A DNA stretch of 64,000 nt. Source: Marsupella aquatica (Eukaryota > Plantae > Marchantiophyta). The DNA lies in contig OZ316898.1 in NCBI GenBank assembly GCA_973895155.1, positions 13,670,330-13,734,329 of the forward strand, given 5' to 3'. The notes beneath the pieces are model-generated. The model had not been told where the DNA came from. It ran no database searches and saw nothing but the letters and a program-made list of their open reading frames with translations. Of the stretch, positions 48,560 to 60,001 are shown piece by piece (position 1 is the stretch's first letter; every line of letters starts with the position of its first letter). The position numbers and the translations under genes were made by a program.

Positions 48560-51500
48560 CTACCCACTGCACGGATCAAAATTGAGCTCGCCCGTTGCAA
48601 GAGGGCCATCGACGACCGTCAATTCCGCAGGGAGGGAAGCAGGGTCGAGCTCGACAGATCCGGGAAGAAGTGAAATTCCATGACTATCCATCTTCTCAGC
48701 TGGTACCCTGTGTGAAAATTTCCGCAGGCCCTTAGGCATGTAGGTCTTGATACCGTGTGGCCCCTCCTGTGGATGGAAAACTGTCTTGAATCCTTTGGTC
48801 TTTACCAGCCTCACTGCATGCACACCAATTTCTGCAGAATAGTCATCAAGCATCTGCACGATGTGGTACTCGTAAGACTGGTTGAATGTCCCGTTTGGTG
48901 TGAGAATTGGCTTTGGCCCAAGCATGTGCAAGATATCCCAATTGCTGAAGATGGCCCAGACCTCGCTCTTTCTCGGATAAACTGCAATCCGTCCCCTGGC
49001 TGGTGCTGCTTTCTCGAGCACCAAGTGAGAAAACACACCGATTTGCCTCTCGATTTCAGAAACTTGGCTGATTTCATACTCACCACATGCAATGGACAAC
49101 CCCGTGGCATCCACCCACCACCTCTTCTTTTTGAGAGGCTCGAGCCATGAAAGTTCCACTTGGAAGGGTGAATGACCAACTCCAGTGATGAGGCCGTAAT
49201 ACCTCGGCATTCCATCGTGGTCATCGTATATTGCCCACACCTGGCCAGGAATGACGTCCTTCTCTGTGCGGAGACTGTCAAAATTGTGAAATTCTGGATC
49301 AGGCACCGTGACGTGGGATACGTCTCTCTCTGGAGCTGGTTCTGACGGACACGGATTGCAGATTGCCAAAGGCACTGGCTCCGGCGAGCTGCAATTCAGG
49401 TTTCTTTGGTTTGGAAAAGGCTCAGTGACTGTCAGCGCCAGGTTCTCGGCCAGAGAAATATCCCTGCTATGTTCTATCTCTATCCTGGATATCATCAGCG
49501 GAGAAATATCCTGATCCCTTCTATGTTCTATCTCTATCCTGGATATCATCAGCGGCTGGGTAGGCTCAGCCTGATCACATCCAGGGGCCTGGTTCTGGAG
49601 AACATCACCTTCGTTTACATATTTATCGTGATGAGCATCTGTCCCGTTTGGGTCGGGGGACATGGAGTTCGGCTTGGCCTGGCTCGATGTCGGAGTTATT
49701 TCCAAGTTTGAAGCACGTTTTCCAGCCGGACTGCCGTCGTCATGCTTAAGTCGTCGTTTCAAACGCCTAGTGCTGTCTAGAGCATCCTCGTGATGTTTCC
49801 AAGACTTACTGCTGTCAACATGCTCGAGTGCTAAATAATGGAGAATCGGATCATAGAAACCCAGAGAAAATTCCTGCATTCGGCTTGCCACGAAGTCATC
49901 CTCACCGAGATACTCCCGACGACCGCGTGACAGGAGAGCGTATTTACATTGGAGAAACTCTTCCTCCGGCATCTGCAGTTTGTCTCTCATTCGCTCCTTA
50001 ACCAGAGCCAAGGTCTCGTTTTGTCTCACCACCATGAGGAACGGCTCTCCAAAAAAGTCACACTTCCGAGAACTTTGAGGGCAACGGAAATGGCGAACAT
50101 GGATCAGTCGATCTTTGGGACCCATGTCTCTGTCTTCCTCTGGTATCTCCACAGCTCGGAGGCTGCTCCTGCAAGACCACTCTTGTGCACCACAGACGTA
50201 TCCGATTTTCTCATTCGGATGGTGGATTTTGGTTATTCTGTGGCAACGAACCTCAACGATTCTCATCTGTGCGTCAGCTGGATTGCGTAGTTCCTTCACG
50301 ATACCACGCAGTTTTTCAACGGCGTCCTTCACAGTACTCCGCCTGGGAAGTTCGAGCTCATGAACCGATAGCTCCTCACCTTTTCCACCATGGAAGGTAA
50401 TCGTTAGAGTCTTTGATCCATCGAGTTCCGGCGGATGACAGTCGAGAATTTTGAAGTAGAGAATTGACGTGGTATCCTTGTAAGCGTTACCGAGGAGTGT
50501 GCTGAAGGAGCTAGTGTCCATTGGAAGAGGCTTAGGCAGCTGAAGGAAGCAGTCGTTGAAGTACAACAATATTCTACTCTCATCTTCCAGACCGACTTGT
50601 TGAGCGACTTTCTCAATGGCATCACTGTACGTATCTTGATTTGACAATTCCAAGAGGAAGTCATCGACTGATGGATTTGAGACCCTACGCAAGCGTATCG
50701 TCTGTCTGTTTCTGAGATGTTCTCTAAACGTTGGCAAATCATGGCACCGATAGGTCGTTCTCTCCTTCCCTGTCAAGACTCTGTTATAGACTACAACACT
50801 GCCATCTTCAAGCTCGGTCTCTCCGTATGTTAAATTCGAATCGAGACACCTCAACGAATCCTCCATATACAGTCGTATCTCTGCACCTGGTGCTAGCCCA
50901 GCGATTTCTCGCAGCCACTCAAGAATCTCTATCGGTCGACTCATAATGTGAACAACCAATCCTCCAACGTACTGCAACCGCTCACTTTTTGGACAGTACA
51001 GCTTGAAGAGGAGAAACATATCTTCCTCTGATTTCGAGGGTAGTAGCAGTCGCTGCAGCGAAACTTGTGCCGAGGTTGTGATCTCTACCGACTCTCGCAC
51101 CTCTACCGACTCTCGCACCGCGGTTGCTGAACGCAAGGCTTGCAGGCAGCTGTAATTGTGGGGAGCGCAGTCTAATCGATTAGAATCCGTGGCTCCCGAC
51201 TGGCCTGATTCAAGACCTGGTACATCAGGCTCGACCGTATATGAGAAACTTCTGAGGGTCAGCACCGCGATTGGAAGCTGGTGATCTACACTTGCCACAG
51301 GGATTGCATTCAGAAGTCCAGCATTTCCCTTGAAAGTTTTTGGGACCACAATCAGAAAGAGAAGAAGAGAGTACGTTGGACTTTGCCAAGTTTTAGAATG
51401 GAGCTCGTAGTAATCTGTCGATAAGGCGAAGCATTCCTTGATCTGCCGGACTCCTTGGAGACCGGTCTCCATGATCTTTCCGACCTCAGCTGTCGGAGCT

Positions 51501-53849
51501 AAATAGAAGGCATGTTGAAAGATGGGTTCTGTCTCGCCTGATGCAGCGCAGTTTGAGAGGCTTTCCTCCGTGTCTGACTCTCGTGTATGTGCCCTCAGCC
51601 TCATCAGCTGACCTGTAATTTATCAGACGGCCGGTCCAGGAAGGAATGGATTAAAATGGCAGCTACACATGAAAGCAGAACACTAAGGTGCCTAGGGCGT
51701 GCTTTGTTCACACAAGACAGCTAAGTTTCACGTTGGGCATTTCTAACAGATCATTCTCAAAAACAAATTGTTTGCGTCAGAAATTATTTTGAAAAAAATA
51801 TCGGACACCTTCCATTGAACTCACCGCAGCAACCGGGCACATGTCTGGCCACAGTCTCGTAAGTAAGTCTAAACTTCCGGTAAAGGAGGTGCCGGTCGTC
51901 ATCCTTGAGGTGCTTGTTCGGTTCAATGGCCAGGATCTCGTGTGGTGCGAGGACCATTTTAGAAACTATTGAGTTTATCAATCCAACGCTCAGTAGTCTC
52001 TGAAAACTACCCCGCAATAGATCCTGTCAACCGAATTAACCGTAAGAATCCTTCGGCAGGTGCAGAAAGAGGCGCTCTGCAGGAGGACAAGCTATCAAGA
52101 AAATACGAAGGTGTTGAGCTCTCATGCAAGTTTCTCGTCTCTGCTAAATCACACCTTCGTCATTTCCGGTTCGTGAATTGGACACAGTAGGATCCACGTG
52201 AATCGTGATGCACTGGTGAAAAGAGTTGTGCCATGGAAAATTGTGGAAAGCGGAGACCCACAACCACTCACCGTGCCCAACGAGAAGATCGTCAAGTTAG
52301 AGCCTCCACCGGACGGCGCAACCTCCTGTGGCATACACGCATTCGAAATCTGTTCACAAGACAGTATGCGACTCTTAGAATGTACACCTCAAGTGTGGAG
52401 AATTTTGGTAAAAGCTACGTACGCCGCATTAATGGAAACTGCAAAAAGTACTGGTACATACAATTTTGATTGGCCGCTTCTTGCCCGATATCGGATTCAA
52501 TTGCTCCATCTCGATCAGATTGATGATGTACTTCACTCCGCGAGGGTATCTGCGGGTGACCAATTTTTTCAGAGTCACGAAATGCTCTCTTCTTCTCCAA
52601 GCTTTCCTAATCTCGAGTACAGCCTTGGCAGCATAGCAGTGCCACTTTCCGGAGTCAGCCTTCCACCATACTCCTGTCTCGATTGGTGCCTGACTGGGCT
52701 GCACAGAAATTTCGACCCGTTACGTCAATGTATTAATCAGTTCAAACATGCATGGCTGAGATTCAGTAGAATGTATGCTTCTCTTGATTCGCTATACTGA
52801 TGGTCGAATGTTTGTCAACGCACGCTACGGGCCTCTCAATTCCAGAAATGGGGAGAAATTGATTCGATATACCGATGTTCGAATGTTTGTCAACGCACGC
52901 TATGGGCCTCTCATTTCCAGAAACGGGGAGACATTGTCCTTAGAGCGAAGCCAATTGACTATCAATTGGAATGTGAGTAAGTGAGCAGAATGGGTACGTA
53001 GGTGCGATTCTTCCCCTCACCTCACCTTGCCGAACAAGATGAAGTTGGTGAATTGTTGGCATTGCTAATTTTTAACTCCTTTCTCCTCACTGGCAATTCA
53101 ATGAAGCTGTGAGAGACGCTCATTTTCTCTCACATCATGTGTATGATCGAAATCAATGCACATCAAAAGCTCTATGAGGCCTGCATGTCCTGTCTTCGTT
53201 TTTCTTTGGAAGAACTCTATTGCGTTACAGATTTTAATTACGAAGCATGTTCTGGCTGACACTGATTAGCATTCTCGCCGAACGACTGTAGCTTATTAAA
53301 TCAACGATCACACACCTTTAAGTTAGGATCCCAGATTTTCACTCCCTGCGAAAATTAAGCAGCAAAAGGTAACGACTAAATGGTCACCGTGTAGTTAATG
53401 GAGGAGATAGTGCCCTGGACGATCGAGATGTCTATTGCCACGCCGGTCGACAGCTCGACCTCCTTCATAGTCTCGAAATCCACCCGATGAGTACATCCTG
53501 TAATGAGCGAACCATACGTACAATCATCTGCCTCTCGTTTCCGCTTCCTGGCATAATTTGCTGTGCCATCGACCCACTCAGCGAAAATTCCGCCATCGCA
53601 GAACGCAGTGAAGATGGACTCCGCGACATCGAGAGGATACAATTCCCAGCAGCTATTGATCTCGTGCCCTGAACGCCGCCACACTCCTGGTGACGTCGGA
53701 GTGTCCACCACGAACTTCTCGACGTTCACTACGCCTGCAGTTTTATCCAAACACATTCTCACCAAATCATCCCGTAACTCTCGCTCTTCTCCATACGCTG
53801 CCAGCGCCATTTTCGTCTGGTCAATTCGTTCCACATTCCCCTCGATCAT
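48560..53849 (-). CDS. Chimeric WWE-WWE-PARP/ART-like-USP7-C(UBL2-5)-DUF3444 protein, ~1334 aa, 5 exons (predicted model)
   Basis: Exons 53849-53388, 52698-52462, 52325-52272, 52023 (or 51999)-51825, 51612-48560; GT-AG and frame-compatible (phases 0,0,0,1). Exon 2 VWWKADSGKWHCY..IRKAW..KYIINLIEMEQLNPISGKKRPI is a WWE. Exon 1 WELYPLDVAESI..HRVDFETMKEVELSTG is WWE-like. Exon 5 LLFKLYCP..LQYVG..FGEPFLMVV.QNETL..YLALEH matches the UBP12/13 C-terminus. PDPEFHNFD..GQVWAIYDDHDGMPRYY..YPRKSEVWA..ELDPASLP is DUF3444. Confidence 0.72.
52784..52931. repeat. 75-bp tandem duplication (within predicted intron 1)
   Basis: TTGATTCG.TATAC.GATG.TCGAATGTTTGTCAACGCACGC...GGGGAGA present twice. Confidence 0.88.
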
Positions 53850-56394: not shown

Positions 56395-58173
56395 CTATGG
56401 AAGAAGACACGCAGGATCAACCTCCAGAGCTCCAAAAGGGATCCCAAGTGTATCATCCTTATACATCTTCCTAGCTGGAATGCTATGCGAGAATTCAAAC
56501 AACATGTCTGGACGGACGTTCGTGGTGATTACAGGTTTTCCTTGTCTTTGGAAGAGACTTTTGAAGCCAGTTACTTTGACCAACCTGACTATGTCCAGAC
56601 TTCCCTCTCCTAGAAAGTCGGAGAGAATCTCAACTAAGTCGTAACCGTTGATGTGGGCTGTTCCCAAGGCTTGAGCTTTCCGTCGGACGCCATTCTCAAG
56701 GTTGCAGTTCTGATACATGGCCCACACTTCTCCCTTTCTTGGGTAGATCTTGACACAATTCTTGTCCCTGTCGGATACTAGGTGAGAGAAGTTTTCAAGC
56801 CCCATCACGTCGCGCTTGTCATTCTTGAAGCTACCACATGACATCGCCAGACGCGTGCGATCCATCCATGATTTCATCCTTTCTGAGCAAGGGTCAGATT
56901 GAAGCCGCCAGATGTCCACTAACTTAAAAGGTGACCCCAAGACTTGAACAACTCTCACATATATTCTCGGCATTTTATCCCTGATTGTGTCGTACGTTGC
57001 CCAAATTTGTCCTGCTTCAATGTCTGTCTCCGTCCTCAAGGAATTGAAGTCATAAAAGTCTACTTCAGATCCCATTTGTTGAGTTTGCAGTGCGCTCAAC
57101 TCTGAAGAGGATCGAAAAGTGGAATTGACTAGTGCAGGACTTTCTTGAAGTTTTGGTCTCAGGTCAATTTCTTCCAGCTCTATGACAACGTTATCAGTGT
57201 CTAGCTCAAGAGAGTTGGCATTACCTTGAGAGAGCGCCAATGTACTGATAATGATATCCATTGCTGGTTTTTGCAGTCTTTTATTCGATGGGCGTACAGA
57301 AGTGTGTTTGGCTTCTTTCAGTTCCTCCTCAGTGTCCTTGTATACTTCTTCAGCTGGCTGGGGCCCCATCTCCACGTCCCCGGACCCATCGTCCAGTTCA
57401 CTATCCAATTCACTATACTCGTGAGGAATAGCAGCGGGATCAAGCTCCAAAGCTTGTTTAGGAATACGCATGAGTTTGTTTTGCTGGATCTTGACTGCTG
57501 GCACGTTGTGAGAGAACTTCATCAAGTCCGAGGTACTCCAAACGTGGACGGCTTGAGGGCCATCTTGCCGACGGAAGACGGTTCTAAAACCCGGCACTCT
57601 TTCCAGCTTGACTGTCTTCACACCATTCTCCTTGGAATAGTCCCCAAGAATCTCCACCACATCAAATTTGCAAGTTACATTTGAAGGCGTGTCAGCGCTC
57701 AGTGGAATCTGATCCCAGTCTCTGTACATGGCCCAGACCTCCACCTTTCTGGGATAAATCTTCAATTTAGTGGATGCTGCTCCTGCAAACTTTTCCTTCA
57801 CATGCATCCTGTGAGAGAATATGTTAATGATCTTCGAAGTAGTGAAATCCCCGTTCTGGAACTCCCCAGTTGAGACATAATACCCGGAGCTAGTCGACCA
57901 CAAACTGCCAAGTGAAGATCGCTGATCAAAAACTAGCCACCAAAATTGTACCTTAAATGGAGATAGGGAAACGCTACTAATCCGGCCGTAATATCTTGGC
58001 ATTCCATCTTTATCATCGTAAATGGCCCAGATTTGACCTGGTTTTATATCTGTCTTAGTCCGTGCACAGTCGAAGTTATGGAAGTCTGGATCAGGAACTT
58101 CAATGACTTGCGGTCTCATTGCAGCTGACGAACACACAGCTGGAGATGCACGCTTTCTCGGGGTCACAGCCAT
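56395..58173 (-). CDS. Protein with two DUF3444 domains, no J-domain seen (592 aa)
   Basis: Two PDPDFHNFD/DFYDFN..GQIWA.YD..MPR.Y..YPRK.EVWAMY..FSH.(V/I)PA..E(L/V)DPA blocks. ATG at 58173 follows a TTCTTCAG acceptor; the track's 60-aa extension looks intronic. Confidence 0.88.
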   Translation of the reverse strand: MAVTPRKRASPAVCSSAAMRPQVIEVPDPDFHNFDCARTKTDIKPGQIWAIYDDKDGMPRYYGRISSVSLSPFKVQFWWLVFDQRSSLGSLWSTSSGYYVSTGEFQNGDFTTSKIINIFSHRMHVKEKFAGAASTKLKIYPRKVEVWAMYRDWDQIPLSADTPSNVTCKFDVVEILGDYSKENGVKTVKLERVPGFRTVFRRQDGPQAVHVWSTSDLMKFSHNVPAVKIQQNKLMRIPKQALELDPAAIPHEYSELDSELDDGSGDVEMGPQPAEEVYKDTEEELKEAKHTSVRPSNKRLQKPAMDIIISTLALSQGNANSLELDTDNVVIELEEIDLRPKLQESPALVNSTFRSSSELSALQTQQMGSEVDFYDFNSLRTETDIEAGQIWATYDTIRDKMPRIYVRVVQVLGSPFKLVDIWRLQSDPCSERMKSWMDRTRLAMSCGSFKNDKRDVMGLENFSHLVSDRDKNCVKIYPRKGEVWAMYQNCNLENGVRRKAQALGTAHINGYDLVEILSDFLGEGSLDIVRLVKVTGFKSLFQRQGKPVITTNVRPDMLFEFSHSIPARKMYKDDTLGIPFGALEVDPACLLP

Positions 58174-60001
58174 GATTAAGTCGAGCTGACGTTTGGGAGT
58201 CCTGAAGAAGACAGAGTGTAAAAAGAGAAGTTCCCTTCCCCACAGGCAACTCAAATCAGTCACATGATCGAGAAGCAAGTGCAGTACGTGAAAGGGAAAG
58301 AAACAAAGAATCAAATTCAGACGGGAATATTTCAATTGGCACGGATTCCTCACTCGAGCACTATTAAATAATTCTCAACCGGCTGAGCATGCAATTCATG
58401 TCTACCAGAATGCTCCTTTGGAACAACCAAAATTTTCTAAGAATTATATATTCAGTACATTTACAGAAGGCTATCTTCATGTTTAGCACAAGATTGATCC
58501 CTGCCTACACCTGGAATTTCACTACAGTGATTTTCTATTACCGACAAAAGTTTCGAACAACGACGTACGTAGTTTTCAACAAAGTGATTGCAACTGCGCA
58601 TTTGGATGTTGAGAAACAGGGCTAAGCACGTTGCGGAATGACGCAACTTTTCTTCTGGTACAGTAGTTAGCTGATCAAAAGAAAAGCTTCAGAAATCAAG
58701 ACTCCCTGTGAAGACTGTCTTTAGGAAAAAGATCTTGTGTTCACAATCAGCGGGGCTCGATCTGTTCTTCACGATCAGTTCTTTTCCTCAAGCCGAAGTG
58801 AGAGAAGGTATTTATTAATTAATACAGGGAAATAACTGGACATGCTCTTTGAAAATGCAGGGACTCGATCTTGCTTCTTGAAGGTATTCAAAGAAAGTAA
58901 GGCACAAACCGAACTAAGGTCTGTATGAAATGGAAGGCCGTCTTCTTCACCTGCTCAACACACTGTACGTACCAGTCACTGCGCCGGCTAGAACATCCGT
59001 GGTCTCCCGATCGGCATTTTCCACATGCCGAGCTGCTGACAATTGCATGTGGCCACCAGATTGTCCGTAGTCTTCTTAGAAAACAACTCCTCACGCACAG
59101 TCCTCCGGACCCCAAATGCCAACATGTCTCGTATAAAAGTGGCACGATCCTCGATCTCGGTGCATGGTGCAGAGCTAATTACTAGTCATTTCTTGCTCAA
59201 AGGCGCAAAAGCGCAAAAGCAACAACTATCTAGCTCACAGAACTCGCCAGCAAAGCTCGATCCCTTCACTTTGAGAATATTCATGTCTGGCTTCCAAAAT
59301 TCCTACAAGGACGTTACTGTGGACAGAGATCGTGTCAATGATCCAGCAGACTCGTACTGACAGCAGTTCTATGCGCAACCCAGATTAAACCCGATCCAGT
59401 ACTCGATAGCTGCTGCCTCGGTTCTATCCGTCTGAAAAAAACTAGTCTCCATGATTTGGAAATCGTCAGGACCTGAGCTGATCGCGCTGATCGACGAAGT
59501 GCGAATCAACTACGGTAGAATGATCGAGGAAACCCGTGATCCACACAGTCCTCAGTAGAATCCAGATTCTAGAATGGCTGAGAGTGTGTAAATACTGTAA
59601 TTAATCGAGTCCTTTCAACGGATCAGGAGTCACGAGTCAGGCGCATGACCTACATGAGGCCTAATTAATTCAAGAAAACCCTGGCAGCACCTTCTTTATT
59701 GCGGGAGTTTACGTTCGATGTGATCCACAGTAGCTACATGTACTCCATAGCTCTCAAGTACAGTGAGTTGTCCCCAATCGAACAGAATTTAATTGGCTGA
59801 GTGCATGCAGTGACACTCCATGTCATGATTGTATGTCAAAACGAAAATACGGAGGCACTCGAAGCAAATTAAAATAAAGACGTGGAGATATCGTACGTCT
59901 CATATACTTTTTTTAATTTATTCCAAGCGACAGTCCCGCGAAGGAATTTGAAGACCCATGGACCACAAGATTGGTCTGTTAAAACCCCATGTACAGTACC
60001 A

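Follow-up and report, generated by a model that had tools for sequence, protein, structure and literature searches.

A liverwort gene joining a WWE domain to USP7-type ubiquitin-like domains and DUF3444: a probable non-catalytic nuclear adaptor

The ubiquitin-like (UBL) domains of USP7 are partner-binding modules, which also regulate its catalytic domain. In plants, the WWE domain has been stated to be confined to RCD1 and SRO1 and to have no direct tie to the ubiquitin machinery (PMC10115779; for an overview of the SRO family, see PMC2848248). The WWE domain of RCD1 binds poly(ADP-ribose) (PAR) with a dissociation constant (Kd) of 28 nM and directs RCD1 to nuclear bodies; neither RCD1 nor SRO1 has PARP or mono-ADP-ribosyltransferase (MART) activity, and human PARP11 and PARP14, in which WWE is combined with PARP domains, act as MARTs (PMC10115779). 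A third module, DUF3444, was reported for JDP proteins to bind histone H3 at its N-terminal tail and to stimulate PICKLE (PKL), a CHD3 remodeler, and five residues in contact with the H3 tail were described (bioRxiv 10.64898/2026.09.14.751381, a preprint of September 2026). A companion study cited with that preprint reports that trimethylation of H3 at lysine 27 (H3K27me3) inhibits the DUF3444-H3 binding (see also 10.64898/2026.09.10.750567). Here we describe a gene of the liverwort Marsupella aquatica, in which modules of all these kinds are encoded in a single five-exon frame. The gene lies on the minus strand, between 53849 and 48560, of a 64,000-nucleotide stretch of contig OZ316898.1 (assembly GCA_973895155.1, positions 13,670,330 to 13,734,329), hereafter the window, and the exons and protein features given below are all on this strand. 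We are nearly certain that it is a functional protein-coding gene with this five-exon structure, and its 1342-residue product, hereafter the fusion protein, is in our judgement quite likely a non-catalytic adaptor, probably located in the nucleus, that was put together from parts of three older plant families.

Exon structure and conservation of the gene

The exon borders were determined by direct reading of the window DNA and by tblastn of the orthologue P0001 (1320 amino acids, Calypogeia fissa) onto the window. The five minus-strand open reading frame (ORF) fragments proposed in the first-pass annotation all exist in the ORF list of the window, and both approaches bear out that they join through GT-AG sites in compatible phase. 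Exon 1 (53849-53388; 154 codons, ending in phase 0 at the donor GTGACC) encodes a conserved helix-rich N-terminal segment and a WWE-like region. Exon 2 (52698-52462; 79 codons, donor GTATGT) carries the WWE domain, one domain thus corresponding to one exon, and exon 3 (52349-52272; 26 codons, donor GTGAGT) encodes a linker rich in Gly and Ser. Exon 4 (52023-51825; 66 codons plus one nucleotide, phase 1, donor GTGAGT) holds the predicted first strand and helix of an ADP-ribosyltransferase (ART)-like domain. The remainder of this domain, four UBLs, a basic linker and DUF3444 follow in exon 5 (51612-48560; 3053 nucleotides including the TAG stop) in a single uninterrupted frame, which forms an ORF of 1014 amino acids. 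The four introns, 689, 112, 248 and 212 nucleotides long, all end in AG, and the donors, including the weak one of exon 1, are those already read in the first-pass annotation. The junction of exons 4 and 5 splits a GGT codon in phase 1. Because the ART-like domain straddles this split codon, the WWE exons and exon 5 must belong to one transcription unit for the domain to be whole.

Three of the four junctions were exactly as proposed before. The acceptor of exon 3 is the AG at 52351-52350, so that the exon begins at 52349 and not at 52325, 24 nucleotides downstream; both sites are in frame, and the eight extra residues gained by the upstream site (ISNAC/SMPQ/P) are kept in the orthologues. The coding sequence is therefore 4029 nucleotides, or 1342 codons and a stop, and the earlier estimate of about 1334 residues is corrected accordingly. 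After a stop, the first ATG in this frame is at 53849, and the N-terminus that it gives corresponds to that of a second Calypogeia protein, P0153 (MFEGNVEG vs MIEGNVER).

P0001 was colinear with the window gene over five blocks of the tblastn alignment. Its residues 1-148 align to exon 1 with 71% identity, 228-252 to 52349-52275 in exon 3, 254-322 to exon 4 with 83% identity, and 320-1313 to exon 5 with 71% identity. In the domain analyses below, exons of the window gene were analysed singly and P0001 was used as the stand-in for the full-length protein. Calypogeia fissa, a leafy liverwort, carries two homeologous copies of the gene, P0001 and P0153, which are located on different chromosomes and are 95% identical. 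Both have the same five exons as the window gene, with the same junction positions and phases, including the split GGT codon, and the weak type of exon-1 donor is also kept (GTAACC in Calypogeia vs GTGACC in the window). The gene had been described as hidden; this is not so everywhere, for both Calypogeia copies are already annotated, P0001 as "unnamed protein product" and P0153 likewise unnamed.

Identity between the window gene and its Calypogeia orthologues was about 71-86% per exon. The ratio of non-synonymous to synonymous substitution rates (dN/dS) was between 0.12 and 0.40 in every exon, at dS of 0.35-0.73. The agreement in junctions, identity and dN/dS goes far beyond chance. The strongest constraint was observed for the WWE exon (0.12) and DUF3444 (0.15), followed by exon 4 (0.17-0.20), exon 1 (0.21), the UBL array (0.25) and the ART-like part (0.31-0.35). 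The two linkers gave 0.3-0.67, the one between the UBLs and DUF3444 being relaxed (0.5-0.67). Genomic contigs of a closer relative, about 97-98% identical, could also be compared. The only exonic indels were of 18 and 3 nucleotides; indels of one nucleotide (52146, 52862 and 53074) and a skip of 67 nucleotides (53294-53362) all fell inside the proposed introns. The exonic substitutions listed for this relative number 36, 16 of them synonymous and 20 non-synonymous. The 18-nucleotide indel represents an in-frame length polymorphism, the relative having one copy fewer of the sequence VRESVE.

This sequence occurs twice in the window gene, as an exact 18-nucleotide tandem duplication in the ART-UBL linker of exon 5 (51083-51119, minus strand). 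A second duplication is found in the UBL-DUF3444 linker (49469-49552, minus strand), where LMISRIEIEH is repeated at a distance of 18 residues. It is in frame and specific to the window lineage, being missing from Calypogeia, and the short-read contigs of one public run break exactly there. In intron 1, a 75-nucleotide unit is present twice in tandem with 91% identity (52784-52936). In each of the four introns there are parts that can still be aligned to Calypogeia, with 70-76% identity, which is unusually good for introns at a dS of about 0.6. The P0153 model has an extra 3' exon of 46 residues (L002 15364-15501) past the conserved end ...CSG, although in the genome this end is immediately followed by a TAG, as it is in the other two genes; this exon is probably an artefact of annotation or an alternative 3' splice.

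Domains of the encoded protein

Four Pfam families were identified in the window gene, and the same four are carried by P0001. The WWE domain (PF02825) of exon 2 was recognized with an E-value of 4.4e-09 (37.0 bits against a cutoff of 21.1). It is followed in exon 5 by USP7_ICP0_bdg (50558-51148; 8.4e-28), equivalent to UBL2-UBL3, by USP7_C2 (49808-50461; 2.9e-35), equivalent to UBL4-UBL5, and by a DUF3444 of full length (48686-49315; 3.7e-53, 180.7 bits, profile positions 4-208 of 211). The USP7-type UBL array and DUF3444 named in the first-pass annotation are thus both present. The UBL block matched human USP7 structures in PDB at 1.4e-23, and BLASTP aligned it, with 40% identity (E 9e-104), to the residues 649-1102 of P0008, a MATH-UCH-UBL protein of UBP12/13 type with 1119 residues. 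By the domain limits of USP7, the aligned ranges correspond to UBL2-UBL5. The alignment stops at residue 1102; P0008 ends in KPVKIYN, and the fusion protein has a basic linker instead. UBL1 and the C-terminal tail of USP7/UBP12 are absent from the fusion protein by the same alignment. The USP/UCH protease (PF00443) and MATH, both present in P0008, gave no Pfam match in any exon or in P0001. With MATH, the protease, UBL1 and the tail all absent, the fusion protein cannot be a deubiquitinase, in agreement with its earlier description as non-catalytic. Likewise, no Pfam match was obtained for the J domain (DnaJ, PF00226) in the exons or P0001, the domain being present in P0005, P0007, P0010 and P0012, or for RST at E<=1 in exon 5 or P0001.

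Two basic motifs resembling nuclear localization signals (NLS), noted in the first-pass annotation, were both found to be conserved. ARKRKRE (53532-53552) is inserted in the WWE-like region of exon 1, its residues A100-R105 being invariant in the three orthologues, and RRLKRRLK (49745-49768), located in the UBL-DUF3444 linker, is identical in P0001. From these sequences we infer that the motifs may serve for nuclear import.

The WWE domain of exon 2 was examined further with a profile of the three orthologues, which retrieved HUWE1 (2.2e-4), DTX1 (2.8e-4) and TRIP12 (0.013) from PDB. When aligned to these three proteins, the domain keeps the signature Y-x-I/V-x-L/F..M-x-Q-x-N..S/T-G-x-x-R-P. 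Because this signature is intact, binding of a ligand by the exon-2 WWE is plausible. A second WWE domain had been proposed for exon 1. The candidate region, a possible and unproven degenerate first WWE at 53409-53687, is recognizable at the level of motifs only (GVWRR...CWELY...HRVDFETMKEVELSTG): W...W..Y and H-R-V-D-F..M...E..S-T-G follow each other in the expected order, separated by the NLS-like insert. Comparison of exon 1 with exon 2 by hhalign was in register but not convincing, at an E-value of 0.065, nor was a shuffle test, in which the observed score was reached by 19 of 2000 shuffles. Other tools gave no support to this copy either: for none of the three orthologues did exon 1 have a Pfam match at E<=10, nothing was obtained from the PDB profile search or from a feature search with a protein language model, and an AlphaFold2 (AF2) model of exon 1 (three-row alignment, pLDDT 42) matched no WWE in Foldseek (nothing at E<=0.001) or in VIA-align. 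Thus, one WWE domain is firm, and for a degenerate second one beside it the chances appear about even.

The ART/PARP-like domain is located at 51236-52023 and is split by intron 4 (51613-51824). When residues 235-500 of P0001 were used for a protein-language-model search, the ten best named clusters were all PARP catalytic domains, including those of PARP12-type WWE-PARP proteins. An AF2 model of the exon-5 part, made from a three-row alignment and lacking the elements of exon 4, showed the order β-α-β-α-β-β-β at a pLDDT of 47. When this model was compared by VIA-align with 48,161 chains, ranks 1-11 were all ADP-ribosyltransferase folds with Z of 3.0-4.1; PARP13 (Z 2.7), PARP16 (2.3), the PARP-like domain of RCD1 (5ngo, 2.3) and DarT followed lower down, and about 30 of the 50 rows listed were ART folds. 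As a control, the equally poor model of exon 1 retrieved by VIA-align a random mixture with no coherent family.

Several results weigh against an ART fold. No PDB match was obtained in this region by phmmer of P0001, and a three-sequence profile gave only Fab light-chain noise in PDB. The language-model score of 0.85 is only a lead by the calibration of the tool itself. The top list of Foldseek was rich in ART folds, but at E>=0.29, with none at E<=0.001. The individual fold scores are each below the level of trust (Z<=4.1, with a pLDDT-47 model of a truncated domain), and yet the enrichment of a single class is striking. Taken together, the model-based comparisons make an ART/PARP-like fold probable. 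Since no match to PARP (PF00644) or any other ART family was found by Pfam at E<=1 in the exons or P0001, and since no H-Y-E triad could be placed, the domain is likely to be without catalytic activity; neither H-Y-E nor R-S-E could be located with confidence on the low-confidence model. The earlier designation as a pseudo-PARP is accordingly supported weakly, by the convergence of language model, AF2 model and VIA-align, and not by Pfam or PDB sequence matches.

The nearest upstream neighbour of the fusion gene on this strand also concerns DUF3444. It includes an ORF of 652 amino acids (56395-58353, minus strand), which contains two DUF3444 copies (Pfam 2.5e-108 over two stretches), only 37-39% identical to that of the fusion gene. 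By tblastn with DnaJ-DUF3444 proteins no J domain was detected in the window, the upstream exons of the 652-residue ORF not being searched in detail. This neighbour is absent within 10 kb of either Calypogeia copy.

Distribution, possible role and origin

HMMER search with exon 5 against 1.84 billion cluster representatives yielded 1416 relatives. Among the best 150 of these, none has the UBL array and DUF3444 together, and each matches one part only; the seven top relatives were identified by Pfam as DnaJ-DUF3444 proteins, a DUF3444-only protein, a UBL-only protein and a full MATH-UCH-UBL enzyme. In word-indexed searches with exon 5 and with residues 1-500 of P0001, the Calypogeia cluster alone showed this architecture, and it is annotated as unnamed. 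A metagenome scan with the ART-like piece gave no match. In full-text literature, no paper was found in which DUF3444 is combined with WWE, or a plant WWE with the UBLs of USP7. The gene is thus known so far from two liverwort genera, and the combination of domains is undescribed in the literature, as the first-pass annotation had supposed. What is new is the arrangement of the modules, which are themselves of known kinds.

This protein is best read as a chromatin adaptor that is nuclear and non-catalytic, because DUF3444 is shown in the preprint cited above to bind the H3 tail. By analogy, DUF3444 would dock the fusion protein on histone H3 tails, PAR would be recognized by the WWE domain of exon 2, and the UBLs, an orphan array, may provide a protein-binding platform by which UBP12/13 partners could be recruited or competed for. 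These actions together could couple ADP-ribosylation signals to chromatin. The chromatin part of this proposal, analogical as it is, has become more concrete since the DUF3444-H3 preprint; the link to deubiquitinase partners, suggested already in the first-pass annotation, we purely infer.

The following points count against such an adaptor. The binding of PAR, of H3 tails and of UBL partners is extrapolated from other proteins. All four public runs that hold the locus, two of them from the relative that is about 97-98% identical, are composed of genomic contigs, being so classed because the contigs run through the introns, and a search for sequencing runs found none of RNA. In addition, the finding of the architecture nowhere else is a weak negative, because the representative library missed the Calypogeia cluster and is incomplete for liverworts.

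The alternative that survives best, itself unlikely, is that the fusion protein acts mainly in the ubiquitin system. UBL2-UBL5 would then work on UBP12/13 as a decoy, or regulate it in trans, either by sequestering its partners or substrates or by attaching to the enzyme, and WWE and DUF3444 would only set its location. The UBL block, 40% identical over UBL2-UBL5 and held at a dN/dS of 0.25, agrees with this possibility, as do the decoy-like appearance left by the loss of the protease, MATH and tail, and the general knowledge that USP7 UBLs bind partners and regulate the catalytic domain. However, the tail that activates USP7 is missing, and trans-activation of UBP12/13 is unlikely for this reason; moreover, DUF3444 (0.15) and WWE (0.12) are more constrained by dN/dS than the UBLs. 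This alternative also overlaps with the adaptor reading and differs from it only in emphasis.

It is improbable that the ART-like domain has enzymatic activity as a very divergent ADP-ribosyltransferase, which would make the protein a chromatin-tethered writer and reader of ADP-ribose. The fold matches were indeed dominated by active MARTs of toxin type and SidE type and not by PARPs, the domain is under purifying selection (dN/dS 0.31-0.35), and the WWE-PARP proteins PARP11 and PARP14 of human act as MARTs (PMC10115779). Nevertheless, neither a PARP/ART family match at E<=1 by Pfam nor a confidently placed H-Y-E or R-S-E was obtained, the domain is compact and less constrained than WWE or DUF3444, and PARP or MART activity is lacking in RCD1 and SRO1, the nearest analogues in plants (PMC10115779).

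An artefact or a decaying chimera, that is, a WWE/ART gene and a UBL-DUF3444 retrocopy that are not co-transcribed, or a pseudogene, is very improbable: the purely genomic nature of the public runs, an in-frame ATG right after the acceptor of exon 5 (MRLRAH) and the weak exon-1 donor GTGACC would fit it, but the frame is intact over 1342 codons with frame-preserving exonic indels only, three genes separated by a dS of about 0.5-0.7 agree in all junctions and phases with even the weak donor kept in type, dN/dS lies far below 1 throughout the exons, and the phase-1 junction of exons 4 and 5 splits the ART-like domain.

For the adaptor, a composite origin may be proposed. The N-terminal module resembles a type-A SRO protein, UBL2-UBL5 would derive from UBP12/13, and the single DUF3444 from PICKLE-associated J-proteins. 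As the UBL-DUF3444 exon is free of introns, it may reflect the capture of a retro-copied 3' part of a UBP12/13 gene next to a DUF3444 sequence. With considerable doubt, we propose a wider hypothesis that this leafy-liverwort WWE protein, which is not an SRO, couples PAR reading and H3-tail binding to the partner network of the Polycomb-linked UBP12/13 deubiquitinases, as a lineage-specific bridge created by exon-level fusion of three unrelated families. The gene provides a clean case in which the shuffling of domains gave rise to a new gene, and selection has kept it in two genera, in one of them as both homeologues. So far, a narrow known distribution restricts its reach.

Comparison with known systems

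Among animal proteins, HUWE1, DTX1 and TRIP12 have the WWE signature in common with exon 2. Deltex contains tandem WWE domains, to which the fusion protein has possibly a degenerate counterpart, and PARP11, PARP12 and PARP14 combine WWE with an ART domain, as the fusion protein probably does. In contrast to HUWE1, Deltex/DTX1, TRIP12, RNF146 and PARP11/12/14, the fusion protein has neither an E3 ligase domain nor an active PARP signature. In none of the listed matches are USP7 UBLs or DUF3444 paired with WWE.

The likeness to USP7, UBP12 and UBP13 is confined to the UBL2-UBL5 array, which is 40% identical over about 450 residues (P0008). MATH, the USP/UCH protease, UBL1 and the C-terminal tail, which belong to these enzymes, are all missing. 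With the PICKLE-associated proteins JDP1-4/DILL1-3, the fusion protein shares a full-length DUF3444, but it is different from them in having neither a J domain nor a zinc ribbon, and in having one DUF3444 against two to six in most matches; nor was a PAD region, by which PKL is bound, recognized in it. The occurrence of DUF3444 without a J domain suggests that it is a portable chromatin-docking module, and the gene offers a separation-of-function construct made by nature, in which the role of DUF3444 alone could be addressed.

Among plant proteins, the nearest analogues are RCD1 and SRO1 of Arabidopsis, the type-A SROs, with which the order of a basic NLS-like motif, WWE and, probably, an ART/PARP-like domain without a recognizable catalytic signature is shared. 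The PARP-like domain of RCD1 (5ngo) is a structural match to the ART-like model, at a Z of 2.3 for a model of low confidence. Because no sequence similarity to SROs is detectable, descent from an SRO is best regarded as a hypothesis. The fusion protein differs from SROs in its lack of RST, and therefore of the transcription-factor hub, in the presence of four USP7-type UBLs and DUF3444 instead, and possibly in an extra WWE-like region upstream. The gene is a liverwort counter-example to the statement that plant WWE is restricted to RCD1 and SRO1 and not directly tied to the ubiquitin machinery: a WWE and probable PARP-like module without the RST hub is here joined to UBLs derived from a deubiquitinase.

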